Of a DNA stretch of 64,000 bases, positions 5,561-64,000 are shown in pieces. The position numbers and the translations under genes were made by a program. This stretch comes from Macrostomum lignano. Its lineage: Eukaryota. Under the pieces are notes generated by a model that made no database searches, was not told the DNA's origin, and saw nothing but the letters and a program-made list of their open reading frames with translations. The DNA lies in assembly GCA_002269645.1 (NCBI GenBank), contig NIVC01001302.1, positions 112,444 through 176,443 on the forward strand, read 5' to 3'. Numbering within the stretch: the stretch's first letter is position 1; each line of letters opens with the position of its first letter.

Positions 5561-5672
5561 TTTTAGCTCTCAATTTAGGTTAAATAAATAGATGTCATAG
5601 CCATAAACAATAATTGACACAATATAAACCATCGTCCCACCTTTGAAGACGACAGCGTCTTCATTCACTAGT

Positions 5673-35831: not shown

Positions 35832-36204
35832 GTCTTATTAGCTATTATTATGTATAATACTCTCACAGGTATTAAACGATACGCGGACTGCCTGCTGTGC
35901 GACGCTGGGGAGCCCGACACTGCCAACAGAGCGGACTTTGTTCGCTCCCAGGCTCTGCGGCGCGCCATCTGACGCGCCCTGCTCTAACTGTGACCTTTGC
36001 TTGCAGGGCCGCGTATTTTGTTATTGTTGTCACAGGTACTAAAGTTCAGCTGAAGTACATAATACCCTACACTGGAGTCCGGAACTTCATGAGATGTATA
36101 TACCTTGTACAAAAGTATGAGATTGGGGGTGAGATTCAGTCATCGTACGAGTACATTTACAGTATGCATCAGACATTATGCATCAGACATGCATGTAAGT
36201 ATAA

Positions 36205-36880: not shown

Positions 36881-37429
36881 GTACATAGCAAATGTACAGT
36901 GTTTTGGAATAACTTTTTAATAGCCTTCTCGGCACCCCGCGCGCGGAGAGGCGTGTAGAGGAGAGACAGTTTCAGCGAGAGATTCAAACCACTGTCCTCT
37001 GTATAGACAAGTCTGCAGCCGTTTCACAGTGGATGGCAAATCAAGGCGATGTGGGATGGTTTGTAAAAATAGCGAAAAATTAATGAATAACTGATTAGTA
37101 CAATAGTACAACTGATTAGTACAATGCAATCCTACTAAATTAGTTACACCATGAAAATTTTAACTTCAAGATTCGCATAAGGTACTTTAAAATTTAAATG
37201 GCTCCTAAGAAATACGTATTTCCTTGGTTGCTAGACTGCTGCAGACTGTGGTGGTGGAGCTGGGCTGGAGGGAGATACACAAATTCCTCTCAAATTGGCC
37301 AGAAATTCTCAAATACACAAATTGGCCAGAAATATGATGTGATTAAAGCATAACAACTATGAGAGTACTACGTTCCACAAACGCTTTCGAAGCGGGGATT
37401 GACAGACTTTAACCTCAAATGCCAGATAA

Positions 37430-40948: not shown

Positions 40949-43900
40949 CTGGATTTAAAAAGTGGCTATAAATGTTCATAAAAGACGACAAATTCATATC
41001 CTACGTTATCAGAGGCAACGGTTATAAAATTGTGAAAGCTGGATCGATGTTTATCTAAAGAATATTTGCTCTGTCTACTCGTGAGTAGTGTAGTTAGGAA
41101 TTCTTTAGAATATGGATGCTTAATGCCGCATAAAGTTATACCCACGGACTACTTAAGTACTATCTACTAGTGGTCCTTGGTTATACCAGCTACGAGTATA
41201 ATGATGACAGATTACCTAGCTTTTTGGCCAGAAAATTAAGCCAAAACACCACTTGAATATAGCCTAAAGCAGTTACTTAGGCACGAGAGAAAGAGACTAT
41301 AAAAATAAAACTGCGAAACGAAAAGGCTTAAGTGTGTGCTTCTTATTTGATAGCGCTAGTTGGAATGAGATTACGACAATCAGTTTCATTCTCCACTACA
41401 CTGCTATACACTGTATCTCTAGACGCCTGCACCAGCAAATGCGCTGTAAAAGTTGTGCGCTTTTACGCTCACTGTGTGTAAGTCTAGAAAAGAAATTATA
41501 ATTTCAAATGTACACTCAAATACAGTTTTGAAGCGGAAGAAGTGTAAAGAGGTAAACTTGAGCAGAGAAAGAAGCCTTTACCTCAGCACAATCAAATTCG
41601 CAATCTTATGATGCTGCAAGTAAGTCGCCCACTCCAACGCGCTCATATTATACTCTCCACGATGTGTCCAATTCGACAGATTTTGCAGAACCTCACTCAG
41701 TTTTTCAATTACTCCAACGTGGTTTTCTCTAGCCGCCCAGATCAGAGGCGTGTTACCGCTAAAGTCTTCGGTGTGAGGCTCTGCGCCCAGAGAGAGCAGA
41801 ACGGCAACGCAATCCTTGTTCCCTCGCATAGCCGCGTGCGCTAGAGCCGTAAGCTTGGCTCGATCCTGAAAAGGTTGACAAAGAATCAGGCTTTGATCTT
41901 CTGGGTTGGTATCTCTGTCTCTTGATGGGCGCCCCTACCCGTGTCTCCTAGGCCGGTGAATACCACGTCCAAGGGTCGGCAAAAGTTAAATTCCTCTCAT
42001 TCGTTATTAGTGGAGATCGAGCTTTCTTTATGAGGGCGCTACAATGTTTGTGGGGTGCTGGGACCCTCTACGTAAGACATTGATACTGCTAGTTCTAACT
42101 CCACCATCTCCAACTGGCAAGCAACGTGATCCGGGGCTGAAAGCTCCTGCCCTCGTTCTGAGCAGCTGCTCAATACGCCAGGACCGTTCAGGCGGGGGCA
42201 AACGAGGACGCGGAGATACGTAGACTGCATCTTGAGCGATGCTGGGGCGACCGAAACCGTCAATGGGCCCGACATTGTCCTCTCGCTGGCACTTCGGCGC
42301 GCCTATCTGACGCTCCATCCACTGACTTACTAGGGGACTGTATCACGCCTTTGTTGTTGTTGTTAGTTCTAATTCCGAATACATGTATTCGCTATTTTAA
42401 ACTTTGCTGCTACTCTTACCCCTTGACTGAGATCGGTGGCTCCCATCTCGTGCAAAAGCTTTATTGTTGTCGGATAATTGTTTAAAGCGGCAAGCATCAC
42501 AGGCGTCTTCAGCGAGTTGTCTGGCGTGTTAACGGCTCGCTTAAGATCTTCTTTGTCAACCGACTGACGCAACTTACTTAGCGTCGTATTGTCCCCGTTA
42601 CTACTAGCAACCGCTACCTGCGTCTGTCCGAGCGAATTGTAACTTTCTAGAACAGGATTTCTTACAGGCAAATAAGACTCAGCTTCACTTATGTGTTCGT
42701 CGGCAGACCCTGGCCTTGTTGCAGGAGACGAGCGAATTTGGCGACTGGGTGCAGGGAAGACAAATTCTGTGGTGCTTTTTTCTCAGAATGTGGAGTAAAT
42801 ACCAGGCGCTCGGAATTCTCTGCTGCTGCAGGGCCCTCAGATTTATGAGGAAGTCTAAAATCCAGTTTTTTCATAGCGAATTAGTGTATATAATTCGGCA
42901 GACAATTGCGTAATGTATAATTCTTAACTGAAACGGCGTCCGGATACTCGTAAGAGTGAAAATAAAAATTACTCACTGAACTGTGTCGAAATAATCCTTG
43001 CCTTCATATCTGAAAGGTAGTTTAAATGCATATATAATATACGAACGTATTTTCACAAGTCAGACTTCAGATGATCAAATAAGTCAAACTTTTACTTCCA
43101 TAATGGCATCAACCTAAGCTTCTAGTGTGAAACTAACAAGGTCTAACACGCATCCTTTAATTAGGATTTAGGAGCCTTAGAAATTTCTTTAGTACGAGTA
43201 CTACTTAACTAACAAATCTTACTCCTCAAGCAGCTTCACAAGCGAATGCTTGTTGCTTTTCCGAGCCAGTTGCAAAGCAGTGCATCCGTTTCGGTCTCTT
43301 AAATTCCAGTTAGCATCATTCTCCAGTAGTTTTTTGGCCACCTGCACCGACTGTGAGTCACTGCAGCAGTCGCTACTGGCTAGGCGCATCAGCGGCGTCG
43401 ATCCGTCCTCTGCTGGAGCGTTCACATTGACGTCGAGTGCGATGAGCTCACGCACGGCTTCTAAATTTCCACTGTTTACTGCCGCGTGTAGGCAGGTGTT
43501 GCCAGTAGCATCTGCGCATGTTGGATCGGCTCTAATAGCTTCGTTCATGATGTCGCTGCACACTCCGGTTCCGCTAGAAATTCTCCACAGCTTGGTTCGG
43601 CCTTTCTCGTCTGGCACATCGCACTTGCAGATCGTTCGCTGGTGCTCGCAAGGAGCAACAGCTTGTAACTGGGCCAAATGGTCCTAGTGGAGTGTGAGCA
43701 GAGTAAAATGGCATTCAGTTAATCAATTCTAACGAAGTTTTAATCTCCTTGGCAAGAAGTTGTGACTTTAAAATTTTGAAAATTTATAGAAAAAAAACAA
43801 AATCTAAAATTTTGCATTGCGTACAATTTTGAGCCATCAACTAAAATAGCAACGAGGGGCAGAGCAGATGAGTGATAAACGCGTCTGGCTATTGCGTCAC

Positions 43901-45562
43901 GACCCCTGATTCGATTCATTTGGAAATTTGGCCAGAGGCTTGCCGTGCGATTCAACACCCAGGAGAGCCAGCTGCCAAAGCACAGAGAGTGTACATGCTT
44001 GATGATTAGAAAGTCAGGGCATGTGTATGAGTGCGTGTCTGCGTATAGCATTGGTGCTCTTGCTCAGGAGTCAGCGAATGGGCAGAATTGTCTCAGCCGG
44101 GATGATGTCGCCGAATGCGTTGTATCGGGCTGCCGGCCACCGCCTTTGTTTTTACTAAAACTGTAGCAAAGTAAAATGTTTGTTTTTAAGCGTCCCCTGT
44201 ATGAGTTAACTTACAGGGATGTGCCAATCACAACCAGCAGATGGTCTAAGTCCGAGTTCACTAAAATTTTCAATAATTAATAGTTTGTAATAATTCTGGT
44301 CTAATCCTGTATCGGACAAACTGTTGCAAATGTCAATAAGCCAGTCCAACCTACAACTCGATCATTTCTTCAATTTTGGCTCGCTTTGCGATATCCAAAG
44401 CTGACAGACCTTGACAGGATTTCATCTCATTCAGGTATTTCGTCTTGAATTGATGATATTTGTTCTGCCGAAAGAGATGCAACAGGTGTTTAATGCACCT
44501 CCATTTGCCAGCTTCCAACGCCACCATGAGAGGCGTGAGGCCCTGGTAATTCTGCAGCCACTTCGATTCAAACGCTAGCAAAGCGAGGAGTTGCAGATTA
44601 TTGTTTCCCGCCGCCAGGTGTGCGGCTGTGTCCCCCTTAGAATCCGTAGCGGAAGGATTGCAGCCTAAGTGGATCATGTAGTCAGCGCATTTTGCTGTTC
44701 GCCTCGCGTAAGTATCAGCGTCTGCTAGCATCAACAGGACGGTGCGACCTTGCAAGCCGTGCATCTTCATTAGTGTCGGATTTGCCAGCTTACGGACACT
44801 GTCAAAGTCTCCTTCCTTGGCAAATTTAACTAGCTGATTCATGGCCTGCAAAATGTGTTTTTTACATAATTGAAGTTTAATCAATGCAGTGTTTGCCTTT
44901 ATTTTTAGGAAGAGGCAAGTGTCAAATTCATCGATTTTGTTATTCTCGATTAAACTTTGAGGGTCTAAAGTCTCAAATGATTTGACTCAAATCCAATGAT
45001 CAGACTACCTGGCTCTTACCTCATTCAAAGACAGAGCATATTCCTCTGGAAAGTAGTCTACTTTGCCGTTTAAATATGCCAGCCACTTTCTTCGATGCTG
45101 AGTCGGCCTGCGCAAAGTCCAGACAATTTGTCCGGCTTTGATTTCGACGCCGAAAGCGGAATAATTATGCATCGCAATTGCCAGGTCATCGGCTTCACCG
45201 AAATCAAACTTATCAATAGGCAAGGAATAAGTGCTCCCGGCGCAGTAGAATGAGCAGCCAGGCGGTTTGATGCTCAGCTCGGTAATTAACACCTTTGTGC
45301 CACCTGGCAACCTGTTGAAGTCTCGAAGTAGCCGAGCCTGAATGCATCGCTTGAGACCGTCGCTAGGGAATGATCCAGTTTCTCCAGTGGACTCTTTTCT
45401 GCCCTTGATAATATCTTTACTAAACAGAGGCGAATCGGTCAAAACGAGATCGCCTGTCTCCAAGCTCGTCTTCGGCTTGCCATCTGCCAAGGTCGATGAC
45501 GATAAGCAGCGAGTTGCTACATACGAGTAGTAGCACTTCTGAGCTGAGCTGCTGCTGCTCAT
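40126..45562 (-). CDS. SH3-ankyrin-caspase fusion gene, paralog B (about 1027 aa if a 1-bp frameshift near 42776-42781 is corrected)
   Basis: Exons 45562-45020, 44845-44355, 44260-44215, 43683-43223, 42854-42420, 41865-41582, 40948-40126; GT-AG, same phases as A and C. Confidence 0.7.
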
Positions 45563-48500
45563 TCTGGTGTGTTTGGGGTAGAGTATTTGTTTAAATTATA
45601 TGCTTTTATGTAGCTGCAAGTATTGCATTTGTTATCCCATCTCAGTTTATGAGCACCCGATCTCAGCCATGCATAGAAATCATCAAATGGATCAAAGAGC
45701 CTGAGTCTCAATTGCGCCATAAAAGAACAGATGGTCTGCTATGAATGCTCAATGAATTGACGGAGTCTGGATGCTCGTGGCTGCATGGCTCTGGTTGTCC
45801 CAGTGATCGGAGATTGTCTATGCGGCGAACCCCTCCTTAACAGCGACGGTTGCATGAGATCGGATGCTCGAGGTTGAGTTTACGTGTCATGAAACACTAC
45901 GAAACACTACGCCATCCTCTATCGCTACAATAGATTTTTACGCATGGCTGAGATTGGTTGCGAAATGCAATTTATAAAAAATGAAGCACACCACCATAGA
46001 AGCATATGTTTTCAGTTTTGTGTAGCTAAATTGAAATTCGCCTTCGTAGATTACCAAAACTTTAAATAACATTTATTTTATTCTCCTATGGAACAATTGA
46101 GAGCCTTCCATAGTTTGGCTATGCAAATTTTGTTTTAACTCCACTGGACGAATTTTTAAACAAATTTCGACCCTAATCTATATATAAAACTAAATCGATA
46201 GCACTATATATTTTATTATCTTTTCATATTGTAGCATGGTACAAACTGGATAGGCTCTACAAGCTCTAGCTCTCTCTTCAGACTACAGAACTTCAATGCA
46301 AATACTCGAAATTCTGATGAACACCTTTTAGCCAACACAGTTAATTTCGTACAGTAATGCATATGTACCTGGATTTCTTTTCGTAACTCAAGTTCACTAG
46401 CGTCATATTTTTGAGATTGTTTTGGTTGGTAAATAGTTGCCAAATGCAACTGTACGTCCTAAAAATGACATTGACAGTTAATGCAATGTGTTAATTTTGT
46501 TTTAATTTGGGTTGTTATTTATATGTAGTTGCTTAACTCATATGAAAAAATATACGAGTGCAAGCTAAATAGACAGCTAAAATTTGAGTACTTACCGTTT
46601 AGTTTATGATACAGTGGTCAGTGAACTAATTCTTGAGTGTAATAATTAATTCAAGATTATAATCACGAAAATGTTTTAACTTGTTGTTTAAATACGCCGC
46701 GAGAAGAGCTTGGTTAGTCAATATAACAAATTATAGTGGATATCGATAATTAAGCAATTATAATAGAGATCCATATTAATAAAAAGACTGATTTAATATT
46801 TTAAAAAAATCTTACTTTATTTAAAATGAAGGAGCTAATTGAAACTATTACGAATAACTAACTAGAAGCGTTTTGAAGATTGATGATTAAATTTTCATTC
46901 TGTTTTAAAGACGCGTAGTGCGGCTTTGTCTGCTGTTGTGCGCGTACGTTGTAGTTTTCAAATTGCATGAAGTAAGCAGCCAAAAAAACACGGTTTAAGT
47001 CAATGGCGCAGGTGTCTGGATCCTATAATACGAGAGTATATAAAGCAATTCAAGCAGCAATCATGACTTTTATTTTGAAGCTGTACGCTAACCTAACAAA
47101 ATAATTTACATGTTCATGTACTACATACATATGATGGGTTCGGCCTTTTTAAGCCTATAGCTTCGGGCCTCAGAATTCAGAAATGAATCACTTAGAACTC
47201 TGGCCTCTCACTCCTGTCAGATGGTCAGCCCCATGGTAGCTAGATTGTGGGCGAGCAGCAATGTCCTATAGCTAAGAGAAGACAGCGAGAGACAAGCAGG
47301 GAGAGTTTGAAAGGTAGAGATTAGCTAATCCGCAGATTAACTAACCCGCTGCCACCAGTCCGTGCGCCCCGGCTCACCAAACGGGAGCTATCGAAATCGG
47401 ACTTCCGACTAGAGGGGCACTGCACTTACCTGCCATCTAGTGTCTTTTAGCTGTCTAAAACTCGAAGTCATAGCCGAATAGAAGGGACGCTGCTGGGACT
47501 AAGATCGCATTGGCCATGCAGGGACAGAGAGGATTTTTGCAGGGGTTCTTGCGCTGGCGAGCCTTCATACACTACTAAATGCACTATTTCATTACCAAAT
47601 TCCCAGAAGTACATTTATAAGTACACGCAACTGCACGCTTTTGGCACTAAATGTGTTAACACGTCGACAGATAGCGATGATGTAGATGCATTTTCACTTT
47701 CGGAGATCTTTAGACTAATATTTATCTCGTTTTATAGCCGCTTAGCTGCCTGAGACTGCGCGAAAGCACCAGTCTGGCACTTAATTCGCATGCTTATCAT
47801 GATTTCTGAGATCGACTGATTGACTGGGAACTGCGCCGCCTCCGGTCCACCGTGACCTCTGCCTCTAGATTTAGCCGCTCATCTCAGCTGGCATTGCGAA
47901 AAAGAAAGAAACGCTAAGTCTTTAACTTCCAGATTTAACTTTCTCACTTAATCCGCAATCCTAAACACTTTAGATTGAGTTGGAGCGAATGGCTACTTTT
48001 AATATTAACTGACACTTCTGCCTCGAGATTGACACACAAAAGCAAGTAAGCAAAAGTGCAAATCCTATCAGACTACCTAGGAAGGGGTCAGACAAAGGGT
48101 GCACCCAGTTAAGCAGGTCAAGAAAGCCTCTCACCCAACCAATCAGAGGACCTATCTGCCGGTAGCCAAGGAATCCACAGAGACCGCAGCGCTCAGACGG
48201 GATGCTGCTGCTGATCTTGACTGACGATCGCTGCCGCTACTCTTCACTTGCCGATGGTCGGTGCTGCTTTTGGTTCGCGGCCGGGAAAGACTGGTGACGT
48301 CTCCCGAGGGAAAAATTAGCTGCTGAAGCCGAAGCTGCCGGGGGAAGGGGGACCAGATGCCGAAGGGGCAGCCGGAACAAGATACCAGCAAGCCCGGAAA
48401 CACCTGAAGGGTCGTGAAAGCAAAGGGTCCCTGGGTGTCCGAGGACGGTTTACTCGAGCGCGGGTCGAGTCGCCGCCTTTTATAGCTCTCACGCGGCCGA

Positions 48501-50424
48501 TTTGTTATTACGCACGCCGAATTTTCTGATTGGTCGAGCCGGGGCAGTCAGGTCGACTCTGATTGGCTGAGTTCAAGACCCCAAAACCCACCCCACCAGG
48601 TGGCCTTCAGACCCCAGGGGAGCTGACAGGTGCGGTCATAAATCATGAGCAAAACCGAATAAAAGTCACTTGTCTAGACATCCTACTGGCACCAAAAGTG
48701 ACTGCAAAACGCCCATAAACCAAAGGAGAAGGTAACAGAGCGAGTGGGGAGAAAGCTGGAAAGACCTCTTTGACCCAGACAAGCTGGAGCCAAAAGTGAC
48801 AGCTAGACGGCCATAAATCACTGAAAACAGTGAAAAAGCCGCAAATCTGGGAGTCAGAATGGGGTTAAAAACGTCGTTCCTCCCAGACTTGGTGTCGCCT
48901 GTCTAGACTGTTGGAGGTCAATCCGTCTCAAACCCAGACAGTCTGACCTTCAAAGGTGCGTAAACAATCCAAAATTAGAATCCTAAGAGAAGTACATTGA
49001 GTTTCTAACATAACTAATAGTAATGGCATAAATTAGTATAGAACTTAGCCTAGATGAGAGAATGGAGAGAAATTCCTAAGCTGGCCTACTGACAGTAGGG
49101 GAAAAGCGCATCGAAGCAAAATGTGCGGTTCTAAGATTGAAAAAAAGTGCGTCCTCATCACATAATATAATTACACTTGTAGTTGAAAAAAATATGTCTC
49201 TACAGAAGCCAACTTGACGATAAAATATCAAATGTTCAAACACTTTAAGTATATGTAAGTATAAATACAGTACATTCATGTACGTGCCATAACAAATACT
49301 GTATGTATCTGCTCCATTTAGCTCCAGCACATGTAAACATGTAAATGTAATTTAAATACCGTCTGGTATCTAATTTTTGTGTTACTTGCTTTACTCAATT
49401 ACTGGATAGGACTCTTGCTTGAGCTCCAGTCCAGATGAGACTCATCGGATGATCCACACAATGCACAAGCCCACTCTTACTTTAATTTGTGTCTTTAGCA
49501 ACTTCTTGGTCGTTGGATTGTCGTTCGACAAGACAAGAAGCTGGGTGCAGTGTCAGGGTCTTCTCTATAGTCTGCAGCTCTGCATACTCGAGGCTGGCAC
49601 GCATCTACATGTAAAACTTCTCAGTAGATACTAAGGTAATTCAGGAAGGCAGTAAAATCACCCATTGGGCAATTGCTTTGTGTGACGAGTAATAGCCTAG
49701 TAAAATGTCCCAATGTGCCGAGAGGGATTTTAAAAGCTACATGTATGCTGCACGCTCGTATGCAATTTTAAGTATTGTGACGTAACCCGGGCTGCATTGA
49801 AACACCTGTACAGTGTGCAACCTCTGGGCTCTGGCGCTGAAAGGTACAGCCGCTAGCAAGGCCTCGTCTACCAGACTTTGTACGCCTTTGGATGGTGCGG
49901 TAGCTGCGTTGCTGCCAAGAAGATCCCAAACAAGGACCACTAGAAGTTATTTATAGCCATGAGTCCACGCGTAGGGTGATTACGTGAGCGTGATGAGTGG
50001 CATTGAAGGCGGTGACCTGTCCTTGACCTCCATTACCAAGCAACCCTGATGACGTCACCCACCAACCGCACTGTGATTGGACAAGAAGTTGGGGTGGGGC
50101 GCAGCGAAGAAAATGATTGATAATAGGGGATTACGTGCATGTATTGTAATAGGCGGGGAAAAGCTTGGGGAGATATGGGGGGTCGTAAAGCTGTCACACG
50201 CATGAATTATGAATTCGAACAATATAAAGTTGTTGCTTGGGGAGTACGGTGGGCGATAAACATGAGTCATCATTGGGATGAGTCATCACGGGGGACAGGA
50301 ACCACAAGGAAGGAAGGGGAGGTGCGCAAAGATTAGTGGGGGCAGGATGTTTGATTATCTGACATTCTGACGCAGCTCCAGCCTATTCTGATCAAACTGG
50401 CTCATGTACAGTATTGCTCCTACA

Positions 50425-51090
50425 TCAGATTGAATTTCCAAACGCCATGAGCTCGCGAATGGTAAGGGCTAAAGGCGGGTCGCTGCGACTCACGACTCGG
50501 ATTCGAGAGACGAAGGCGTTGCAGGTGAAGTTGGCCACGGAGAACGGCACGCTGACGTTCACCTGGTTGGACATGGACCCGTCCACTTGCAGGTCGAACT
50601 TGTTGAGCCTTTCAGCGCAGCAGCCCTGCCTGTTGTAGATGGTAACGAAAGTCACAAATGACTGGGCTGTAAAGCTGCCCTCCCACTACTTGTATTGCCG
50701 TCGATGGCTCCATTGAAGGGGTAGGGATAGACCGGTTCGGTTGAGCTCTGGCCGCAGCCCGAAAACGACAAACGCTTTGAGTTTGACGTTGAGGTAATCC
50801 GGTGAATTTCATCTGCATGTTTAGTTGAACTCATTTTTTTAATTTTTAAAGCCAACTTCCAAGTAGATAAAAATCTATGCAGCTGACCTACCGGCCACGA
50901 AGACGTGCCGGTGCTGACCCATGCCCTAGCGTTGAAAAACGCCTGCAAGTTGAACAGCCGACACGCTCCGAGCAGCCAGTAGAAGCCGAAGCAGTCCGGT
51001 CTGAAGCCGCAGCCGATGAGAAACTCCGATGGAGCGACAGCACTGCTCGTTCTGGCCGCGGTGAAATGTACAGTCTGGACGGAAGCCTCT
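50425..51090 (-). pseudogene. PAN/apple-like + F-type lectin (fucolectin/FTP) gene remnant with frameshift
   Basis: GCGFRPDCFGFYWLLGACRLF exon; next exon QSST...AIDGN, then a different frame WEGSF...VTIYNRQGCCAERLNKF...LTIRELMAFG. Confidence 0.6.
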
Positions 51091-54000
51091 TACGGCTACG
51101 GCAGCCATCAAGCACACAGAAATAATGGTCGCAAGATGATGTTTCATTCTGCGAGTCATGTTCGATTCTTGGTGTTAAAAATTTCATCATTAAGAGATTT
51201 TGAATTGGATGTTATTGTATATAGGCAATAGAGCACAAACTCACCAAAAATAAGCGGATTCCTCCCTGAGTACTGAGCTGTAGCAAATTTGTCAGCCCTT
51301 ACACTAAAGAGGTAGAGGATGCTTGTCTATTGTAAAACTAAAAAACGTCACTCAACGGCGGTTGCCATGGCTACGCTCGTACACGTCATTATATTTTCCC
51401 CTATTAAAATTGAAGCTGGTCCAGGGGTTTGAAATGAGCAGTCATTCAGTCTATGGAATTTAATAGCCAATGCTGAGTGCAGTGACGGGCAGCAGTTCAG
51501 TTGCGTTGGATGCGGGATGCGGGTGGAGAGAGAATGGTAGGCAGGGGGAATAAAATGTAGAAAATTTTCCCTAATATATCTCTGTAAATTTCCTTCATCA
51601 GAGAAGCGCGGTCCGGCATTTTTCACTAGTAAAGTGTAAAACTTTATCCGCCACCCTAGATCCTCACTCAGGAGTGTCTCATTGTCCAACAGAACAGCCG
51701 TTCCCATGGCAACCGCTCCGCTTTTCAATGTTTTGACAAAAAATGCTGCTTCTCTCCCAAGGGCTATTTATCTGGGATCGACTAGCTGGCTGTTTGCCCA
51801 GCTACACAGACCGCCTAAACCTCTGAGCAATGTCGTATTAGAATATGTTTGCGTTCTCTAGCTGGACTCTCCGACAACCTCCCTCTCCGTCTCTTCCTCC
51901 GACCTCTTCCTCGGCCCTCTCCGTAGCCGTACGGGGGCCGTAGCCCAGCACAGTGGTCCAGCAGTGCGGAGCTCTGATCTGGCTCGATTCCAAGTGCAGT
52001 CACATTAATTTGGGGCTAAATTGGAATCTCGGCTTTGCTCTGCTCGTGACCCTTGAGGGCCAACCCCCAAGGCACAGTGAAATGTACTTGCCATAACAAT
52101 GAATAAAGATAGGGCCGCTGTACACTCCTGTGTGAGTGTGTGCCTGTGCGTATGACTGCGTGTGTATCCGCGCGCTTGTGCGCCTGAGAATCATATATAT
52201 TTAATCCAATATTATTTAGAGGGACTATTAAGAATAGGATTTAGGTAAGGTTAGATCAGGAAATTAGGAAATTGCAATGTAATCAGAGTGTGGTGCAGTG
52301 CAGCAGTTGTGGAGGCCTGTACCCTTACTAAAAACCACAAGTGCTTGATGACGGGCATTGTAAATGGTGAGTGCAGGCCGCCCTAAAAGTCTGTTTCCAC
52401 TTTAAGGGTCTTATGTCTTATTTGGGACGGGGATTCAACTACATGTCCATCCAATACTAAGATAATTCAGAAGACGCACCAGCACGTCCAGCAGGAAGGT
52501 CCGTGAGAATCGGCCAGGATTGCGAGTCTGGGAGCGGCGCATTATTATTTGATGTGAACATTTTGAAGGGTTTGTGTGGGGGAAAACTAACGAGCTATTA
52601 TAAAGTTCCGACCAGACTTATCCTATACGCTTAATGCTTGCTTTAATATAATTGTAATTTTATGAAACCCAAATACTCGTACATATAGCTTTTCCTGCAC
52701 CAACAGTGGCGTACATATAATTAACAGAGCGCATATCAATTGACATATTGCATGCGAAAATCCCATTTAAAACTGCGCTGAAACGGTGCTACTTTCAGCC
52801 AATACCATGCAGGGATTCGCCAAAATGCTGGCACCGATATAAATGTAGTGCATATGTTGTGAGCTGCGCCTTACAATGCCCTTGCCCCGACTACTGTGCT
52901 CTCCGCCTCTCCTCTCCCTGCCGCTGGTTTACATTCTGGTCTGCCCCCCTGTCTTAAGCTGCCATTCTTCATTTTATTTTTTGTTTTCATTTTTACTGGC
53001 TGGCTGTCTCTCTCCCGTTTGGGCCAGTCCAATCATGTCTCTCGCCGCGCAGGCCCCTGATTGGCCAGCCTTCCCCCAATTCTTTCTCTCTCGCTCTTCA
53101 ACACCCCCCGTCCCCAGCCCTGCGTGGCTTAGCCCACTCAACCCCTTGCTCTCACCAAGTATTTACGTGCGCGCACGGCCCTCGCCCGGCTCTCGCCCTC
53201 CCCATGCCTCTAGCCTCTTCTGCTCCCTCTACCACTACGTACTTAGTACATAAGTCAGAGCAAAACGAATTAAAGCGACAAGGCAAAGCCAGACTGCATA
53301 AGCGCAGCAGCGAGAGTTACCCATCCCGGAAGTACAGAGTGTTGTTCTTCATTTATTTTTCGTCTTCCAAGTATTCTCTTCTCTCGTCACAGTCTTTATT
53401 CGGGTCTGCGAAATGTCCGTGTACGCCTCCAGAGACCTGGAACCTCCAGAAACCTCTGCTGCTGCTGAGTGTCTGTACGCTCTCAGCCCTCCACTTGCGC
53501 CCCTAAGTACGCCTAGGGGGTTGCCGCTCTCCCGCTTATATACCCGGCAAGCTCTGGGCAGTCCCGTACTCAAACCCCGATCACCCCGTATGCGCGGTCC
53601 GCACGGACGGATCGATCGAAGCGTAAAATAAAACACAAAATAAGAATTTATCATTTTTCATAAAGCAAAGTTTTTATTTAATTTTTTATCAAGATCTCAG
53701 CAAAAACTCCAGAAATTAATTGATTCGTTGTAACAAATTAAACAAAATGGTCGGAAAGATTTAAAAATATTTGTTAAGAGTAAAAATTGGCATTTAATGG
53801 CACTTAAAAAATGAGGAATATAAAAAATATTTGTAAAATTGTCAGAAAAGTGATACAAGCAGTTAGCTAGCTATCTATAAAATAGGACATTCGTTAAACA
53901 ATCGTTGGAACGTCATGAAAGGCTAGATTTAATTCCTGATACTCTCGCGAGATTCTGCAAAAAATGGGCGAAAAGCTGGAGAGGAAATTTCAGCTCAACG

Positions 54001-54960
54001 ATTTAAAAAAATTCTTTAAAGCAACAAAACTTCAGAACTGGTCTTGCTTTGTGATTTACATTTAAGACAGTAATGCATATTGATAGCTATTTATAGCTTA
54101 AAATCATCGGGGTCCAATCCGGTTGAGGTATCGCCCCATCCGCGTCCTTCCGGTTTGCTTCCGGTTTATTTTAAGAACGAGTTTAAGCAGGCTCAAACCC
54201 CGGGTGCAAACCGGATGCAGAATGTTAATTCACTTTAGGGCGTCAAGCGTAAAAATTCTACCTTATTAAAACAAACATTACATTACACCTGAAAAATCTG
54301 TCTACATTTTGAATTGAATTGACATTTTTACCCCATTTATAAAGCAAAACAACCGTTGGATTTTTTTCTACTTATGACGCAACGGCAAGTTGCATCAAAT
54401 TCGAATATCACAGTCAGCCTCTGTGCCGGTTTTTCCCGCTATTTCTGGGACAATTCCCTCGTACATGCATATAAATGTTACACGAAAAATTTCCTTTCAA
54501 AAGCACCACAAAATTTTCCAACTTTATTGTTTGTTTCAATCAGGCAAGTCCGGCAAACACCGAAAACTAAACTATTTGTGTCTTAAATAATATCTTAAAT
54601 ACTTTCAGTAGTAACTGTAGATAAATTCAGTACGATACATACGCAGTTTCTAATGATTAGGGTTAGAATAAGGATTAAGATTTAGGATGGGGTTATGGTT
54701 TGGTTAGGATTCAGGACACGAACTGACGAAATCGTATGTAAAAGCTGCGTAACACCTCAATTCTGATGAGGTTATAAACGCGCCTTGAATACACAAGAAT
54801 TTTTCATTTAACTTTACATTAATTCTTCAATTCAACTTTAAAGTATCAGCAAATATGCGTGTAAGCAGACACCTCACCTCAAGCCGGACAAACGTGGACA
54901 CAAAGGACAGCGATAAGAGGATGCGAACAGAAAAGGTGTGCAATACACAACAGTTAGCTT

Positions 54961-55837
54961 TTAATTTCTGTTTTGAACTCTAATTGGGGGAAAGTAGAGA
55001 TGCTTCTGCAGAGTAACTACCCATTCGACTACCTGTCGGCCCCCTGTTGCTTGATTAACTTGATTAGCAACTTGCAGCAACAGGTGGTTGTTGAAGTCTT
55101 CGAACCGCAGGTCGGCCGCCATGATGACGTCACGGAATATGTTAGTGAAAATGCCGCCAGTTGAACCACTTCGCTCCGACCCCAGACCCTCGGAAGTGCT
55201 GTAGATGTACAGGCAGTCTTCCAGACATTGCACCCGAGTTCGCGGCGCCACAGGCCCATCCACTACTCGGCAAGCTTGGACAATAAAAATCTTCGGCTTG
55301 CCACGGAGGCCGGGACACTCGCGCACCTGGCTGAACAAAGACTCCAGTTCGATTCTGTGGCCGTCTGTACTGAATATGCAGCCGTTATGGCCGTGGCTCA
55401 TGACGCACAATACAAAAACATCATGCTGCTGGTATTGTGTCACAGGCCTGTTTATAGCGGGCAGGTAGTGCGTAAAGAAGTGACTTGTCAGGTTGCAGTG
55501 AATTTCTACTTCCAGTCCCAACCTCTCGAACGCCTGTGTCAGCCCCGTCTCGTGGCTATCGTTCATTGCTCCATGCCTTCGAGGTAGACTCGCAGTGTTG
55601 AAGTTAACATTGTTTATTATAATTGCAATGCCTCTTGTGGGTCTGTCCATGGAGTATCGATTGGGAGGCAGCGGCATTGGCGGTGCTGTTGGCGGTAGCG
55701 ATGGAGGAACGACGGAAGGAGCAGCCGCCGCAGTAGCTTCGCTCCACGGAGCCCCGTTCTCATCTCCAGCCTCAGCAGTGCTTCCTCTGGCACTTGTAGC
55801 CAATGTTCTAGCGTCGCTTTGGTAACTTTTTGGCATA
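54961..55837 (-). CDS. Caspase domain exon of paralog C
   Basis: RGIAIIINN, RRHGAMND, VMSHG, KPKIFIVQACRV, YST..G..SER. Confidence 0.92.
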
Positions 55838-58800
55838 CTAAAATAAATGTTTTTTGCATTTATGCTCTAAAATTAATTAGGATTAATTTTCAAATTCGTG
55901 AGCAACTCTACTAGCTTATTGCTCTGAAATCTTTTATTACGAGCGGTCACGTAAATGGGTTCGGGGGCTTACGTTTATTGATGACAGTGGCTAGCTAAAT
56001 TGTATCACATTGTCCACTACTAGCGTAGAGACGCTACTGTTCAAATAACTGGTCTTTGCCAGGGGCTTACATGCTTACGAAGCGGGTTGTACAAAGCGTG
56101 AAGCTGAAAGAAGTTCCTAATAGTATGAGCTAGTTAGGTAATACAGACCTCATTTATGAAAATTTTCGAATGTCCTTATGACAAAAATCACTTAAGTTCG
56201 ATCTTCTTTCTGCGTAAATCGACTCGAATAATTACATGGCTCGACTTAATGGACTCTTGTAGCCTACGCTCCTAAAAAATTACAGATCTAAAATATCCGT
56301 GACGCAAGTTAAGTTTCCTGGAAGAATTGTTTCATTTACCTCTGTTGGATGAAATCACAGCAGTCCTGAAATTTATTGAACTTGGCCCATTCCAACGCTG
56401 TCATCTTGTACTCCCCTCGATGAGTCCACTCAAGCTCCGGAACTCGACTCAATTCCTTGATCACTTCCAGGTAATTTCCCCTAGCGGCCCAAATTAGAGG
56501 CGTGTTGTCGCAGAAGTCTTTGGTGTTTGCCTCGGCTCCGATATCGATCAGAATGGCCACACAGTTTTGCGACCCCCGCTTGGCGGCGTGCGCTAGGGCG
56601 GTAAGCTTGCACCGGTCCTATTAGTAATTTGAGGCGAGGACGCAATAGGCGAGATGGGCCTGGACGCAACTTAAATCATAGTTATGTAAGCATCAATAAG
56701 TTCTTACCACTTTCTTTACATCGGCTCCCATGCTATGCAGCAACTTCACCGTATCTGGATGGTTATTCGCGGCCGCGTGCATCAGAGGCGTCGAAAGAGA
56801 GTTGTCTGGCTTGTTGACTTCTTCGACCACGTTAAGATGCTTTATATGTGACTTGTTTGTAAAAATTTTAAGTAACTTATTGTTCCCTTGAGTGCTGGCC
56901 ATGCAAATCGGCGTCTGTCCAAGTGAATTTTTAGCCCGAATTGAGGCGCCAGCTTTCAATAATTTAACAGCCAGTTCGGGGTCTGCATCGCTTTTTGCCA
57001 ATAGCATGAGAGGAGTCTCGTTAGTGCCCCGGCTCCACTTCTCATTCAGAACTTTGTCCGGCTCTTCCGCATCGAACAAGCGCTCGATTTCCTCAGCGGA
57101 AATAGATTGCTGTCGTTTAGGAGTACTCGTTTCTTGTTCCGACTCTAGATCGGACTCATCAATTCTGCTTGCCCTTTTTTCTCTTTCCGAACGAATTTGT
57201 TGCAGCGTTAAAGCAAAATTGGATTCTCCTTCTACTCTTTCAGGGTGAATTGAAGATGCTGCACGGATAAGCGGAGTAGTGATAAAGCATTGCTCTTGTT
57301 TTTTCTTCGGATTAATTGACGACACTGGACGATTAGTGAGAGAGTCTTTGTCTGCTTCTTCAGTGTGAGCTGAGGTCGGTGCACCAATATCACAAAATTC
57401 TCTGTCTGATCCTTCAGTGTCAGCAGAAGTCGGCGCACCAATGTCACGAGATTCTTCATCTAATTCTTCAGTGTGAACTGCACTGTGTGAAGGAAGCAGT
57501 TGTCGTTCATTTCCTGATTCTTCTAATTGTCTTAAACCCGAAAAATCTGTGTTTTCTTCCAAAATCGCTTTCGGGCGGTGTGAAGGACCTTGAGGACGAA
57601 TGCGCTTCTTTATTTTTTCCGTCTCATATTTTAAACTAGTAGCTTCAGAGGATTCAGACTTTCGCAGAATATCTTCCTTCATGGACCCTTCAAGACGTCT
57701 TTTAGGAGGCTGCGTCTTCTGGAGTTGCACCATTGAGTACTCAAGGGCTTTGGCTGGAGCTGAGGCAGTAACGATGCTTGTTAAAGAGTGTCTTGCTTGA
57801 CTTGCTCTAAAATATTGTGTTTTAGAAGCATGTTTGTTTAATATAATAAATGCCGGAAATTTTACTTTAGTAACGGTTTGACTATATGAATAACAACGTT
57901 TGCGCTGATCGTGAATCATTGGTTCTTCCAGTTGGGTTTCTTTCTCGAATGTTGTAATTCAAAAGCAACATTCAGAGTGTGAATTATTCAGACTTTGTTA
58001 AAAAGTGGTTTCTGTACTAGTTCTCTGTAGCAATTATAGTCTATGGTACTGTTTGATATTTGTTTTTATGCAGGTGACTGCCTGTGGCAAGGATTTTGTA
58101 TGGGAATGTCTGTGACACGGATGGTCTACGGGAATGTCTGTGGCAAGGATGGTCTACGGGAATGTCTGTGGCAAGGATGGTCTACGGGAATGTCTGTGGC
58201 AAGGATGGTCTACGGGAATGTCTGTGGCAAGGATGGTCTACGGGAATGTCTGTGGCAAGGATGGTCTACGGGAATGTCTGTGGCAAGGATGGTCTATGGG
58301 ACTGTCTGTGACAACGTTTGGTGGCCGGTACAGTCACCGCGTATTTCTCAGCCTAATACCAGTAAGTTTTAAATCGGTAAATGACATTCACGGGTTTTCC
58401 GTGCCGTACGCTCGTACGATTCAAGAAAACAATAAAGTAGCTATAGAAAAAGCAAGCAACTACAGTAGCTAGCTAGTTTCGAGCCTTACCCAGCCACTTC
58501 GAAATACGATCTCCCTTCATATCTAAAATGGAGGAAAATAATGCACAAAGTTAAGAGTAAGAAGAAAGTGCATCGATTTTCGAAAACAAAACATAATACT
58601 TAATATCTTCAAAAAGTCCTAAGATTTTAATTAACAATTCAGATCATTTAAAGTGCTTTAAAGTCATAAATTGTACAGCCTAGTCCTAAGTTAACCTATT
58701 AACAAATTTTTGCTAATGGTACCCTCCAAAACGTATGTTTAGATGTTGGCCGACTTCAAATGATCTAGTTTTACTTTAGTGCCACTTTAGTGCTTACTTT

Positions 58801-61800
58801 AGTACTTGCTGTAATCAAGCAACGAAGCTTTAATGAATAATTTTTGATTCGCAAAAATAATTCTCACTGCGAAAGAAGCTTGACAAGACTGTTCTTTCCG
58901 TGCTCAACAGCGAATTTCAGGGCCGTAGAGCTGCTATTGCTCTCAATCGTCCAGTCCGCACCTGCATCCAGAAGCAGATCAGCAATTGTTACTGACTCGC
59001 TGTCCGAGAGTTCTGAGCTGGTTGCCACGCGCATTAAAGCGGTAACGCCGTCTTCAGTTCGCTCGTTCACGTTTACTCCTGCGTCAATGAGCGCTTTTAT
59101 GACTTCTTCGTTGCCTTTACGCACCGCCGCATGCAAGCAGCTGCTGCCAGCTACGTCGGCACAAGTTGGGTCAGCTTTGCTCATCAGAAGGCGCAGTAGG
59201 GATTCATTGCTCTGGTTGTCCTGGACGCACTGCCACAGAATCGTCCTCCCGTGTATATCTGGTAAGTCGCAGTTGCCAATCGTCAATTTTTGTTGCAGTG
59301 CCGATACGTTGTTGGATTGGAAAAACCGCATAAGCTGGTTTCGAACTTCTCCCTATGGTTTCATATGAGTTATGTATTGCAAACATAGCATTAATAAATG
59401 GTCCAAAATAGAGTCTTTTTAGCTAAACTATGAAAAAAACTGGGCAATGAATGCTTTTGGAAAGTGGCGTAGAAACTTTTGGTGGGTGCCAATGTCTCTT
59501 GGTGGGCACCCCTCTCTCTTTTGGTGGGTGCCACTGTCTCTTGGTGGGCACCCCTCTCTATTTTGGTGGGTGTTACTGTCTCTTGGTGGGCGCCCCTCTC
59601 TCTTTTGGTGGGTGCCACTGTCTCTTGATGGGTACCACTGTCTCTTGGTGGGTGCGACTGTCTCTTGGTGGGCGCCCCTCTCTATTTTGGTGGGTGTTAC
59701 TGTCTCTTGGTGGGCGCCCCTCTCTCTTTTGGTGGGTGCCACTGTCTCTTGGTGGGTACCACTGTCTCTTGGTGGGTGCGACTGTCTCTTGGTGGGTACC
59801 CTTCTCTCTTTTGGTGGGCGCCCACTATTCCTGTCTCTTAGGCCGGTTGCTGCAATGCTCAAAAGATGGCAAAAGTTAAGCTCCTGTCATTGGTCGAGGT
59901 CGGTTACTTTTTAAATTAGTTTTTGGAGAAGTATAACTTTTTGTAGAGTGATTGAGGAGCCACTTGGGGGAGGGGCCTCCCCACCATGGACTTCGCTCTG
60001 CGTACGCCATTGCGTAGAGTTTGAAGACTCAAACTTGAATTTTAATTTATTCTTTTTATCGATGTTATCTATTTATTTACGTAATTTTTGTCTGTTTCAG
60101 GCCAAATGCACCAACCATTGCACAATGAAAAAATCCTATATAGTTAGAGCAGAAGTTAAGAGATTCACCAATTCATTGCTTATGCAAACGGTTTTAGTAA
60201 GCGGGCAGTTCCTCGCCCAAGACACAGTTGCTTGCCATTCACTGGAACGAAATCGTATGAAGCAGTTCTAAGACTCGCTAAATCGCTTTAATATTTGCTA
60301 GACTATTGAAAAATAATTACTCGTAACTTACATTTCTATTAGATTTCCAATTTCCTCATTCCCGTTTTCCTTTGCAATATCGAACGCAGTTAAACCGTTT
60401 CGATCATTATTTGCAACAAAACCTTTCATTTTATAGTACCTTTGCTGCCGAAACAGGTGCAGCAGATGCTTCGCGCACTTCCAGTTGCCCAGCCTTGCGG
60501 CTTCCATTAGAGGCGTGCGTCCCTGGTCATTTTGCTGCCACTTCCAGTCAAATGGCACAGCGGTTACGTGAGTCAGCGCGGTGAGAAATCGAAGGTTGTC
60601 ACTTTGGGTTGCCAGATGTGCTGCTGTGTTCCCCTTTGCATCTATGGAATACGGGCAGCATCCTAGGTGTACTAGATAATGTATACACTTAGCGGTCCCT
60701 GGGCTGCTGTTTTTTGATTCGGCTGCTAGCATCAATACGTTGCGGCCTTGATCACCATGCATCATCATCAGCTCCCTGCTAGCTAGTTGGCGAACTCTTT
60801 CGAAATCGCCTTGGATTACGTGTTCAGACAATACAGTCATGACCTGCAATTGAAAGTTGTTTCGAGTATTCTAAAAGCATTTCTTGATTTTATGAGTTTT
60901 TACAATGCATGCTTATTATTGCTAAAAACTTTTTGCCATGAAACAAAACTAGACTTTGGGTGCAATCACAACTTCAATTATTTGAGCTGCTCGTCTGGGC
61001 GCCCCAGCTAAATAGCTGTAATCTTCAACCATGCATTGAATTTAGTAGTAGGATACTATATCTCAAAATATCGGGATAGATTGTTCAAATTCTAAGGCAG
61101 TCAAGTTTAATTTATTGGCATTTGAAAGCTCTAAGGGACTGCAACAATTAGGCGGGCAGTTGCCACAATGAGACCATTGCCTCACCAGCTGCAGTGTGAC
61201 GATATGCCAACGAAGGCTTTGTATCAGGGTTGTCCTCCAAGACCCTGTAATACAATGCTACTGTTGATGCTATAAGTAACAGTTGCCAAAATGAGTATGA
61301 TTTACCTTTTTTAATGGCCAAACGTAGTCGCTACAAAAGTAACTTGCCCGTTGACCATCGACCTCGCCAATCCACCAGTGACAAGAATCTGCATTGTCGG
61401 TATGCCTGTAAAGTATCCATACAATCTGTCCCACAGTAAGGGTAAGCTCGTCTTCATTTGTGGGAGAGTATGAGCCAATCACAACGGCCAAATCATCATC
61501 GCGCTCAAAGTAAAACATTTCAATTGGTTGTGTGTGTCTATTTCCATCGCAGTAGAACGAGCAACCCGGATGTTGCAAGCTCAGATCAGTAATGAGCGCT
61601 TCAGCGCCAGCTCTCAACTGTTTGAAGTTACGGAGCAAGCGAGCTCGGATGCATCGCTCGAGACAGTTGCTCGAGAACAAGCCCGCATCAAGCGTCGACT
61701 CATTGCGACCTTTGATGTATTCTGTGTCAAACTTAGGCAACTCTGTGGATACAACAAGGTCTCCTGGACGCAAACTTCGGACTTCGCCATCTTCAGAAGC

Positions 61801-61848
61801 TGGATGGCTGCGCTTTGCTACGTAAGTGTAGCACTTAGTGTTACTCAT
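54961..61848 (-). CDS. SH3-ankyrin-caspase fusion gene, paralog C (about 1282 aa, fully open)
   Basis: Exons 61848-61306, 60843-60332, 60241-60169 (least certain), 59334-58868, 57806-56708, 56617-56340, 55837-54961; total 3849 nt = 1283 codons with no internal stop; GT-AG, phases 0,2,0,2,0,2. Confidence 0.78.
58075..58315. repeat. 28-bp minisatellite in a paralog C intron
   Basis: gggaatgtctgtggcaaggatggtctac. Confidence 0.9.
59470..59830. repeat. 20/24-bp compound minisatellite in a paralog C intron
   Basis: tctcttggtgggtgccactg / tcttggtgggcgcccctctctctt alternation. Confidence 0.88.
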
Positions 61849-63642
61849 GCTAAAAAAATTAAAAATAGTGGTTAAAGTCCTTTTTTTAGCAAAGCGCATT
61901 ATCAAATCTAGATTCGGAAAAGACGGCACCCACAAGATTGTGGCGCGCAAAACTAATTCCCTAACACAATGGCTAACAGGTAAAAAAGGTGGAAAGTCAA
62001 AAAATAACCCCAAGAAAAATTTGGAAAATTACTACAATTGTCGAGACGAAGGGCAGTGAAGAGCCATTGGATAAGCATGGCAAAGGTTGATAGATGCAAA
62101 GTGATCTGCTCACAACGTCACGATCGCACGTAGATGTTTGATAAGAGAGTTGATAGAATTCTAATCAGAAATCCTATTATGAGTTTTTAAATGTCTAAAT
62201 GCTTGAATTGGAGCAGTAGCATTGAAACTAAATTAAAGGGAATTAATTAACAAAAAGTGAATAGTTATGCAAGACACTAAATAACTAAATATATTATAAT
62301 ATCATTAATAAATCAGACCATGTAGAAGCATTTATATTGCTTAAGTTGCATACAACTGCCAAAGTACTTTTATTATATGATATAAATGATAATTAGAAAA
62401 ATGAAAAATGAACTGAAAATATTAAGCGTTGACTTTGGAACTAAAATATTTGTAAAAATATACATAAGTTTATTTAGCTAACATGTTCACTTTGAATAAA
62501 TAGCTTAAAAGGCAGACAAAGCAGAATATCTTTATATTTTTAAAGGCTTATACCACTAGTGAAATAATGATCACATTTATTAGTAACAGTTTTTATTGCG
62601 GAAATACATATAAATACAAGTTTTTAGTGCTGCTATATGCTAAATCACCATCCTACATGCATATTACAACTGTGGATACTGTCCATAAAATCAGATGCGT
62701 AAAGCTAGAATATTTGTTCGTAATGATATTTCACAAACATCGTACTGTAACCTACCATTACACTAGCACAAATATAAATCTAATACAGACTGCACTTATA
62801 GCTTTTTATAGCATATAAATTTTATAATCCTAATTATTCGTGATGTCCGACAGATCTTTGGAACTGAGGATTTGACTGGCAGATGGGTAGTTCTCAAATT
62901 AAGGTCATGATGTTTTGGTACAGAAAAAAAAGTTTTCGAATAAAGTAATTGTTTTGTGAAAAACGATTATTTCGTCAATTTAATTAAAAAACTGCCATTA
63001 AAACCACAAGAAACTAAACATTTCAGACGAAATCTAGCAATTTGTTATTTTTCGCAACGGAGAATAAAACGACCAAAAATCGTGAAATAGTGCAAGTTTT
63101 CTTTAATTTTTATGGTTAAGATGCATCTTTTATTCTATTTTTACTATTTAATAAGGATTATTTCAAAAGAAAATGTTATTTTTAAATCAATATTTTGTTT
63201 TTTTCGTCTAAATTGCTTGTATTTAAAATTATCGCGTAACAAGAAACACCCGAAATAATTGTTATTGTACAACTCAAAGACTTGAATTATTGTACTTAGC
63301 ACCTAAATATGAAGCTCAAAATCTACAAAGATTGTTTCGCTAGAAATTAGGTTTACAAAATATGTCTTTTAATGCATTAAAAGTATTTTGAATTATAATA
63401 TATATAGTAAATGAGCTAGGACGCCATTTCTTTTAAAACCTGAAATACATGTATCTTTTTTCGAACAGACTTGCGTTTTCTTTTGAAAAAAGAATTCAGC
63501 AAGCATTTATATTCTGCAACATAGCTTTTAATGCTATTTTACTATTTTACAATTTTCTTATGCAATTAGCTAGGCTGCACATAATAGAACAGCTTTATTA
63601 ATTTAAATTAAGTAGTTTGGGCTTGGTAAGTTAATTGGCCTA

Positions 63643-63783
63643 TTACAGACGTCTGACTCGGCAGCCGCATGGATCACTGTGAACCTCCTTAATCGATTCT
63701 GGTCCTGCACTGTCATGCTCGGTGCAATTCGTCTCATTTGATAACCACCGATGCCTGCAGAACTGACCACATCCAAAGTACCA
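63643..63783 (-). CDS. Possible Cys-rich terminal exon of a gene lying mostly beyond the window
   Basis: Acceptor tgtacag|TGG, frame WYFGCGQFCRHRW...PCGCRVRRL*, AATAAA at 63594-63599 (minus); a second open frame overlaps. Confidence 0.3.
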   Translation of the reverse strand, partial: WYFGCGQFCRHRWLSNETNCTEHDSAGPESIKEVHSDPCGCRVRRL

Positions 63784-64000
63784 CTGTACAATGATGCGAG
63801 AGAGGTGTGCGGTTTGCAGTGCTTTAGCCAATTGGGTCAGTAGAATTAATTAATCGATCACATTAGAATAAAAGTAGATGTCGTTTGCTGTAAAAAGTAG
63901 ACGTCATATGTAACAAACCAATAGCAAGACATTATTAGATGTCTTTCCCTTCTACTGATGCTCGCATCAGCTGGCTGCCTCCACAGGCACAGCTCATCAC

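Follow-up and report, generated by a model that had tools for sequence, protein, structure and literature searches.

A gene for a predicted SH3-ankyrin caspase in the free-living flatworm Macrostomum lignano

Introduction

Caspases with an ankyrin (ANK) pro-domain, the ANK caspases, have been described from flatworms as the sister group of the DED (caspase-8-like) caspases and were proposed to act as initiators (PMC11463336). The clade was stated to be restricted to parasitic flatworms and its origin was linked to parasitism (PMC11463336). Macrostomum lignano is described in the literature as free-living, and the only caspase reported from it in that study carries a kinase pro-domain; SH3 is not among the pro-domains listed there and the term 'SH3' is absent from the paper (PMC11463336). 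Here we describe a gene of M. lignano, called gene C below, that lies on the minus strand at 61848-54961 of the terminal 64 kb of contig NIVC01001302.1 (assembly GCA_002269645.1). This 64 kb stretch was analysed as a whole and is referred to as the window, and positions are counted in it unless another contig is named.

The reading that we propose, with a probability of roughly 0.6, is that gene C (BOX15_Mlig016621g1) is an eight-exon gene for an SH3-ankyrin caspase, an Asp-specific long-prodomain protease that would be activated by proximity, and that it is the sole uninterrupted member of a cluster of three paralogs (A, B and C). By architecture the product is best filed as an ANK caspase, here with SH3 domains added and in a free-living flatworm. 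A caspase with an SH3 and ankyrin prodomain in a free-living flatworm was not in the literature found. The tandem cluster, together with at least four more ANK caspases in M. lignano, would move the origin of ANK caspases earlier and separate it from parasitism.

Results and Discussion

Gene C has eight coding exons

The GenBank entry for gene C is PAA69672.1 (P0208), 'hypothetical protein BOX15_Mlig016621g1, partial', a 5'-partial product of 1297 amino acids. Its annotated range maps to window positions 61842-54961, leaving the ATG at 61848 outside the annotated coding sequence (CDS), and its sequence is identical to residues 3-1299 of our eight-exon model, that is, to the model minus its first two codons. 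The eight-exon model had been rebuilt from a sister copy of the gene before P0208 came to light. GenBank gene models of this assembly come from a genome-guided transcriptome (StringTie and TACO on RNA sequencing (RNA-seq) data, and a mapped de novo transcriptome), and Illumina and RNA-seq reads were used in polishing the assembly (PMC5730564). Gene C thus has eight coding exons and a product of about 1299 amino acids when read from the ATG (Table 1). Its sequence is already public as an unnamed model, and the encoded product is undescribed in the literature found.

A sequence-only reading of this DNA had joined seven hand-picked exons into a frame that was said to close exactly, from the ATG to the TAA, with no correction. 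We rebuilt this chain from the window; it consists of the exons of Table 1 without exon 5 and with exon 4 beginning at 59334 (59334-58868, minus). The seven exons total 3849 nucleotides (nt) as claimed and translate to 1282 amino acids with the terminal TAA as the sole stop, and all junctions have the form AG/exon/GT. The seven-exon set nevertheless differs from the RNA-seq-derived GenBank CDS at two places and is 17 residues short. The acceptor of exon 4 is 59352, 18 nt upstream of 59334, which adds the residues GEVRNQ, and the 33-nt exon at 58522-58490 is absent from the seven-exon model. The frame still closed because both differences (18 and 33 nt) are multiples of three. The sequence-only reading had singled out two sets of junctions as decisive. 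In the proposed chain 60332 to 60241 to 59334 the first junction is present in the GenBank model and the second, 60169>59334, is replaced there by 60169>59352, and the junction 56340>55837 is likewise present in the RNA-seq-derived model. All junctions untouched by the two differences are correct. The junction peptide ...CCDFIQQS/MPKSYQSD occurs in P0208 and its equivalent ...CCDLIQQS/MP(K/N)SYQSD in P0001 and P0209, two products of other copies of gene C.

Frame closure by itself is weak evidence for an exon chain; between exons 2 and 4 there were 110 stop-free, frame-restoring AG..GT segments, and the next intron held 34 in-frame optional segments. The micro-exon chosen in the seven-exon chain was right because the paralogs had been compared. 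Micro-exons starting ag/TGAA do lie at the equivalent site in all three paralogs. Their lengths are all 1 mod 3 (C, 73 nt; A, 52 nt; B, 46 nt), and the one in gene C takes the reading from phase 2 into phase 0. The 33-nt exon also has counterparts in all three paralogs, each between AG and GT, reading YEGHNYFDIVQ in A (from 30157) and YEGKDYFDTVQ in B (from 43008). The Y-E-G-x-x-Y-F motif was found further afield in related M. lignano proteins, as YEGKVYF in the ANK caspase P0003 (Mlig016858g2) and in looser form as YQSKKFF in the ANK caspase P0002 (BOX15_Mlig009377g1) and YHDQIYF in the ANK kinase P0005 (BOX15_Mlig034440g1). At the start of exon 4, P0208 and the sister-copy models P0001 and P0077 read ...NELGEVRNQLMRF or ...GEVRNQLMRF, and paralog A has LEDTRKRLVRF, which is homologous to the GEVRNQ region.

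These observations bear on the alternative that the 1282-amino-acid product, made with acceptor 59334 and with the 33-nt exon skipped, is the predominant isoform or one that is made regularly. The frame is kept at each of the two differences, the alternative sites conform to canonical AG/GT, and in animals cassette micro-exons are frequent, as are alternative acceptors at a distance of 18 nt. However, acceptor 59352 is used in all public models covering it (P0208, P0001 and P0077), the 33-nt exon is included in both models spanning it (P0208 and P0001), the YEGxxYF peptide is kept in paralogs A and B and in P0003 and more loosely in P0002 and the kinase P0005, and residues homologous to GEVRNQ are kept in paralog A. 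We consider a regular seven-exon product very unlikely. As a caution, a hand-built exon chain may close exactly and yet miss an in-frame acceptor shift and an in-frame micro-exon.

Table 1. Coding exons of gene C and the equivalent ag/TGAA micro-exons of paralogs A and B (window positions).
Feature	Position	Strand	Description
Coding exon 1	61306..61848	-	543 nt, amino acids 1-181; ATG 61848; SH3-like domain 1 and SH3 domain 2
Coding exon 2	60332..60843	-	512 nt; ankyrin block 1; same in P0208
Coding exon 3	60169..60241	-	73-nt micro-exon ag/TGAATGG... (EWQATVSWARNCPLTKTVCISNEL); in P0208 and P0001
Coding exon 4	58868..59352	-	485 nt; ankyrin block 2; acceptor 59352
Coding exon 5	58490..58522	-	33-nt micro-exon, ttttag/ATATGA...GGCTGG/gtaagg; YEGRSYFEVAG; ends the ANK1-ANK2 module; in P0208
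Coding exon 6	56708..57806	-	1099 nt; Glu/Ser-rich linker, then start of ankyrin block 3
Coding exon 7	56340..56617	-	278 nt; remainder of ankyrin block 3
Coding exon 8	54961..55837	-	877 nt including TAA 54963-54961; Ala/Pro-rich linker and caspase domain
ag/TGAA micro-exon, paralog A	~31146-31095	-	52 nt, EIGFNHAG...; in public models P0078 and P0210
ag/TGAA micro-exon, paralog B	~44258-44213	-	46 nt, ELGLRPSAG...

The top database matches of the model all came from M. lignano, and the reverse complement of 44961-64000 was 100% identical to the contig over the 19,040 bp compared. A prokaryotic or viral origin, or a chance open reading frame (ORF), was rejected in view of the canonical introns, the metazoan domains and the 100% match to a flatworm contig.

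We infer that translation of gene C starts at ATG 61848. The complete models of paralog A (P0210 and P0078) begin at the homologous Met, favouring this ATG. So does the fact that all three paralogs start at the homologous position and share the arrangement AG-N-ATG, in which a single base separates an AG from the start codon (C 61842-61851, A 33003-33006, B 45562-45565). The GenBank CDS of gene C begins at 61842, immediately after a second AG at 61845-61844. Spliced-leader trans-splicing at AG 61845-61844 does not readily explain the partial CDS, as the leader (...GCATG) would yield ATG-TAA, out of frame. The published spliced leader ends ...GCATG and is not reconciled with the partial start at 61842.

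Two introns of gene C contain minisatellites, one at 59476-59822 with units of 42, 20 and 124 nt and one at 58082-58314 with 8.3 copies of a 28-nt unit.

Domain content N-terminal to the protease

Residues are numbered in the 1299-amino-acid model, and the ankyrin repeat counts are from manual reading of the sequence. The order of domains in the product is SH3-like, SH3, ankyrin 1, ankyrin 2, Y-E-G-x-x-Y-F, acidic linker, ankyrin 3, Pro/Ala-rich linker and caspase. Pfam matches on the gene C model were Ank_2 (5.5e-72), Peptidase_C14 (2e-29) and weak matches to SH3, and the long exons of gene C are clearly coding. CARD and DED gave no match in the Pfam scan at E values up to 0.1.

SH3 domain 2 spans amino acids 121-178 (61488-61315). 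When exon 1 was scanned alone it scored 27.7 bits with Pfam SH3_2 (cut-off 21.8; 2.3e-6) and 24.0 bits with SH3_1 (cut-off 22.9), and its profile matches to solved SH3 domains included dynamin-binding protein, SH3KBP1 and vav-2 (2e-6 to 3e-6) and CD2-associated protein (1e-5). SH3-like domain 1 (amino acids 1-65; 61848-61654) is divergent and had no Pfam match in C. It matched residues 3-84 of the double-SH3 protein P0082 in BLASTP with an E value of 7e-12, a stretch that is unmapped to Pfam SH3 in that protein, and in paralog A (P0078) residues 19-70 scored 19.6 bits with Pfam SH3_2, below the cut-off. Exon 1 was also compared with 1.84 billion representative proteins. The full N-terminal module was found in only three or four of them, all copies of A, B or C, and the remaining ~125 matches were generic SH3.

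About 14 ankyrin repeats are arranged in three blocks, with ~4 in exon 2, ~4 in exon 4 and ~6 in exons 6-7, and exon 3 encodes a short connector between blocks 1 and 2. The acidic linker in the first part of exon 6 is ~255 amino acids long and Glu/Ser-rich (E 36 and S 32 of 256 residues). The motif PLPPNR lies at 55647-55664 (amino acids 1063-1068), seven residues before the Pfam caspase start, and is not conserved in A or B. PxxPxR is the class II SH3-ligand consensus.

The segment from ANK1 through the connector and ANK2 to YxGxxYF behaves as a module of ~365 amino acids. The module is collinear in the caspase P0003 and the kinase P0005, where identity is 37-39% (E 1e-67 and 1e-68); the peptide of the 73-nt exon lies within it, and YxGxxYF forms its end. 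Its presence in both a caspase and a kinase therefore points to one recruitment module joined to two kinds of effector.

The caspase domain

The caspase domain comprises amino acids 1076-1289 (55635-54994) within exon 8 and matches Pfam PF00656 over positions 1-233 of the 233-position profile (2e-29). In phmmer searches of the PDB the closest matches were the reconstructed ancestor of caspase-3/6/7 and caspase-3 (6wi4) at ~1e-20 and caspase-8 at ~4e-19. An AlphaFold2 model of the domain, built from a 42-sequence alignment, had a predicted local distance difference test score (pLDDT) of 90.8 and a predicted template modelling (TM) score of 0.89, and Foldseek placed it at TM 0.79-0.84 to caspase-8, -6, -3, -7 and -9.

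The key residues are His1156 (55395-55393, SHG), Cys1197 (55272-55270, QACRV), Arg1095 (PRRHG), Gln1195 (QACR) and Arg1230 (GSER). In the alignment, columns R31, H92, G93, Q131, A132, R134 and R166 are invariant in 8-9 family members (Macrostomum caspases and outgroups), and R1095, Q1195 and R1230 fall on the invariant columns R31, Q131 and R166. We take these three residues to correspond to R64, Q161 and R207 of caspase-3, which form its P1-Asp pocket, as judged by motif context and not by residue-wise superposition. Of the aligned members only P0003 (QAGRG) is without the catalytic Cys. By sequence, gene C retains both the His/Cys catalytic dyad and the Arg/Gln/Arg P1-Asp pocket.

The inter-subunit loop is short, with 18 residues from the Cys to a strand-flanking Asp; in caspase-3 this stretch is 29 residues, or ~11 longer. 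No Asp in the loop is conserved among A, B and C. Gene C has VVD-G right after QACR, where A and B are without Asp, and the sole conserved Asp near the loop is the strand-flanking column D151.

These features could mean that the caspase domain is a dead scaffold and the protein only an SH3/ankyrin adaptor, in the way that c-FLIP is the pseudo-caspase counterpart of caspase-8. The pentapeptide reads QACRV and not QACRG, the linker between the subunits is unusually short and without a conserved Asp, and a family member, P0003, has itself lost the Cys. However, His1156, Cys1197 and Arg1095/Gln1195/Arg1230 are all retained in A, B and C and the predicted structure is a confident caspase fold, and we regard a pseudo-caspase as quite improbable.

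The paralog cluster and other copies of gene C

A tblastn search of the window with the model found two further collinear copies on the same strand, A at ~32964-24721 and B at ~45547-40147, with 38-56% identity. Gene C is the only uninterrupted paralog of the three in this window, and the frames of A and B are broken. In paralog B the GenBank product has 579 amino acids and starts at 45562; after the 33-nt exon the frame runs into a TAA at 42694-42692 (in the stretch 42692-42880, minus strand), and ankyrin block 3 and the caspase domain are then encoded in a different frame. In paralog A the frame changes near 28890, inside a coding 45-nt tandem repeat, as compared with the intact 1435-amino-acid P0210 from another contig. 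This repeat makes up ~9.5 copies of a 15-amino-acid unit, PERPEIGNEVSSEDP, in the linker exon (28742-29184, minus strand). Paralog A also contains a minisatellite at 27265-27870 with a 27-nt unit.

The assembly Mlig_3_7 contains at least four copies of this gene, of which the window copy alone is uninterrupted. The copy L001 (NIVC01000070.1, 9610-16450) is 98.2% identical over 8.5 kb; four nucleotides (ATGG) are duplicated in its exon 1, and one nucleotide is deleted from a G run in its exon 8. Because of this duplication and deletion its product P0001 (951 amino acids) is without the N-terminus and the caspase domain. P0209 (283 amino acids) turns into unrelated sequence and stops inside the caspase domain, and P0207 (240 amino acids) consists of the caspase domain only, with a divergent C-terminal end. 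Assembly errors may account for some of the breaks in the other copies, such as the 1-nt deletion in the G run. The layout between C and B also differs in L001, with an additional ~0.9 kb and with a stretch corresponding to window positions 49172-51094 that is rearranged or inverted.

Gene C might be intact by luck, as a redundant or decaying recent duplicate in a polyploid genome that is under relaxed constraint and heading towards a pseudogene. The other assembled copies of C, three in number (P0001, P0209 and P0207), carry frameshifts or are fragments, neither A nor B has an unbroken frame in this contig, and duplicated blocks with >=95% identity add up to 180 Mb of the assembly (PMC5730564). 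The ratio of non-synonymous to synonymous substitution rates (dN/dS) between gene C and the 98%-identical broken copy was 0.76 (13 non-synonymous and 4 synonymous changes), a value that rests on 17 changes and is uninformative. Set against this, gene C has a 3900-nt frame over eight exons with canonical splice sites and all catalytic residues, which is unlikely to persist for long without selection, and the exons diverge from the L001 copy by 0.46% as compared with ~1.2% outside exons. The breaks elsewhere are possibly in part assembly errors, and the high dN/dS may stem from the broken partner alone. Decay of gene C is in our judgement unlikely. The claim of the sequence-only reading that gene C is the best candidate for a functional full-length member was largely right for this contig as far as sequence goes, the product being 1299 and not 1282 amino acids long.

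Comparison with described caspases

Like the platyhelminth ANK caspases (PMC11463336), gene C has ankyrin repeats N-terminal to the p20/p10 region, no CARD or DED, and a flatworm host, and caspase-8, a member of the DED group to which the ANK caspases are sister, is among its best sequence and fold matches. Unlike them, it carries two SH3-like domains in front, three ankyrin blocks, a 255-amino-acid acidic linker and a shortened subunit linker. The SH3-like pair, the third ankyrin block and the long acidic linker are additions seen in members of this cluster. A restriction of the combination to parasites was not found, as proteins with ANK and C14 domains in M. lignano also include P0002, P0003, P0034, P0041, P0043 and P0210. 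These proteins argue against the stated distribution and not against the resemblance to ANK caspases. Among the matches of our word-indexed homology searches there were no ANK-caspase sequences from parasites.

Gene C shares with caspase-8 and caspases-3/6/7 (C14A) the fold (TM 0.79-0.84), the SHG His, the QAC Cys and the Arg/Gln/Arg pocket at 24-31% identity, and differs in being without DED, in reading QACRV and not QACRG, and in a subunit linker that is shorter than in caspase-3 and without a conserved Asp site. As compared with the classical initiators (caspase-2/8/9/10, Dronc and CED-3) it is without CARD or DED and, though it may behave as an initiator does, is not a member of that group.

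Within M. lignano, the related proteins P0002, P0003 and P0005 have no SH3 by Pfam, and their length leaves no room for the acidic linker and ankyrin block 3. In P0005 protein kinase domains replace the caspase, and the caspase domains of P0002 and P0003 are only 25-27% identical to that of C.

A proposed mode of activation

The gene structure, splice pattern and domains are shown above, and the function that we infer is as follows. The product of gene C would be a cysteine protease of the initiator type, with a long prodomain and specificity for aspartate, in which the SH3 and ankyrin domains stand in for the CARD/DED death folds of classical initiators. Through these domains the protein would be recruited to, or clustered on, its partners, after which the caspase domains may be activated by induced dimerisation and not by cutting of the subunit loop. 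This agrees with the only paper found on such proteins, in which an initiator role was proposed for ANK caspases (PMC11463336). Activation would probably be independent of loop cutting because there is no conserved Asp among A, B and C in the short loop. That the protein's own SH3 might bind PLPPNR as an autoinhibitory latch in gene C is only a speculation.

Several points weigh against reading gene C as an active SH3-ankyrin caspase. The fifth residue of the pentapeptide QACRV is Val where QACRG would be expected, and the short subunit linker could hamper formation of the active-site loop. The CDS is 5'-partial from 61842, and the start at ATG 61848, and hence SH3-like domain 1, is probable and not proven. 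The AlphaFold2 model of the N-terminal 181 amino acids, from a three-sequence alignment, had a pLDDT of 35.6 and was unusable. A neighbour-joining tree, a rough indication only as it is without support values, P0002, P0003 and the parasite ANK caspases, sets A, B and C off on a separate long branch, apart from the M. lignano ankyrin caspases P0041 and P0043. The dN/dS of 0.76 does not show purifying selection, and RNA-seq reads are unassignable between the copies of C because these are 98% identical. A literature search on Mlig016621, Mlig003046, Mlig001178 and Mlig004809 returned nothing, and gene C is unnamed in the papers found.

A broader proposal, which we make only tentatively and consider rather unlikely to hold in full, is that ANK caspases predate parasitism and had already expanded, in modular form, in a free-living flatworm of an early branch, with one ANK1-ANK2-YxGxxYF module wired to a caspase or a kinase, and SH3 domains added in this cluster, for lineage-specific death or immune signalling that replaces the FADD/DED route reportedly lost in flatworms, and with the PLPPNR latch in C. 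Transgenesis of M. lignano has been published (PMC5730564) and knock-down phenotypes are in the literature, and therefore the activation of non-death-fold initiators is directly testable there.

Other features of the window

Positions 1-14264 consist of a ~4.22-kb tandem repeat in at least three copies with 98-100% identity. Each copy contains a 52-nt minisatellite array (4460-5559, 8677-9778 and 12912-14010) and, internally, a sub-repeat with a spacing of 883 nt. The alternation of 40% and 50% GC in 2-kb steps is due to this repeat. An ORF of 182 amino acids at 15801-16349 on the plus strand matches the ABC transporter transmembrane region PF00664 (3.1e-11) and, judging by this match, is probably an exon of an adjacent ABC transporter gene. 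Between A and B, at 36000-40000, there is a strong strand asymmetry, with a GC skew of 0.20-0.41 and an AT skew of 0.18-0.28, and an ATG-initiated ORF of 269 amino acids at 37440-38249 (minus strand) had no Pfam match. A 23-nt satellite, TAGCTTCCTAATTAGCGATGCAT, is present at 20985-22138 in ~50 copies with 90% identity, and a related 22-nt array lies at 22722-23017.

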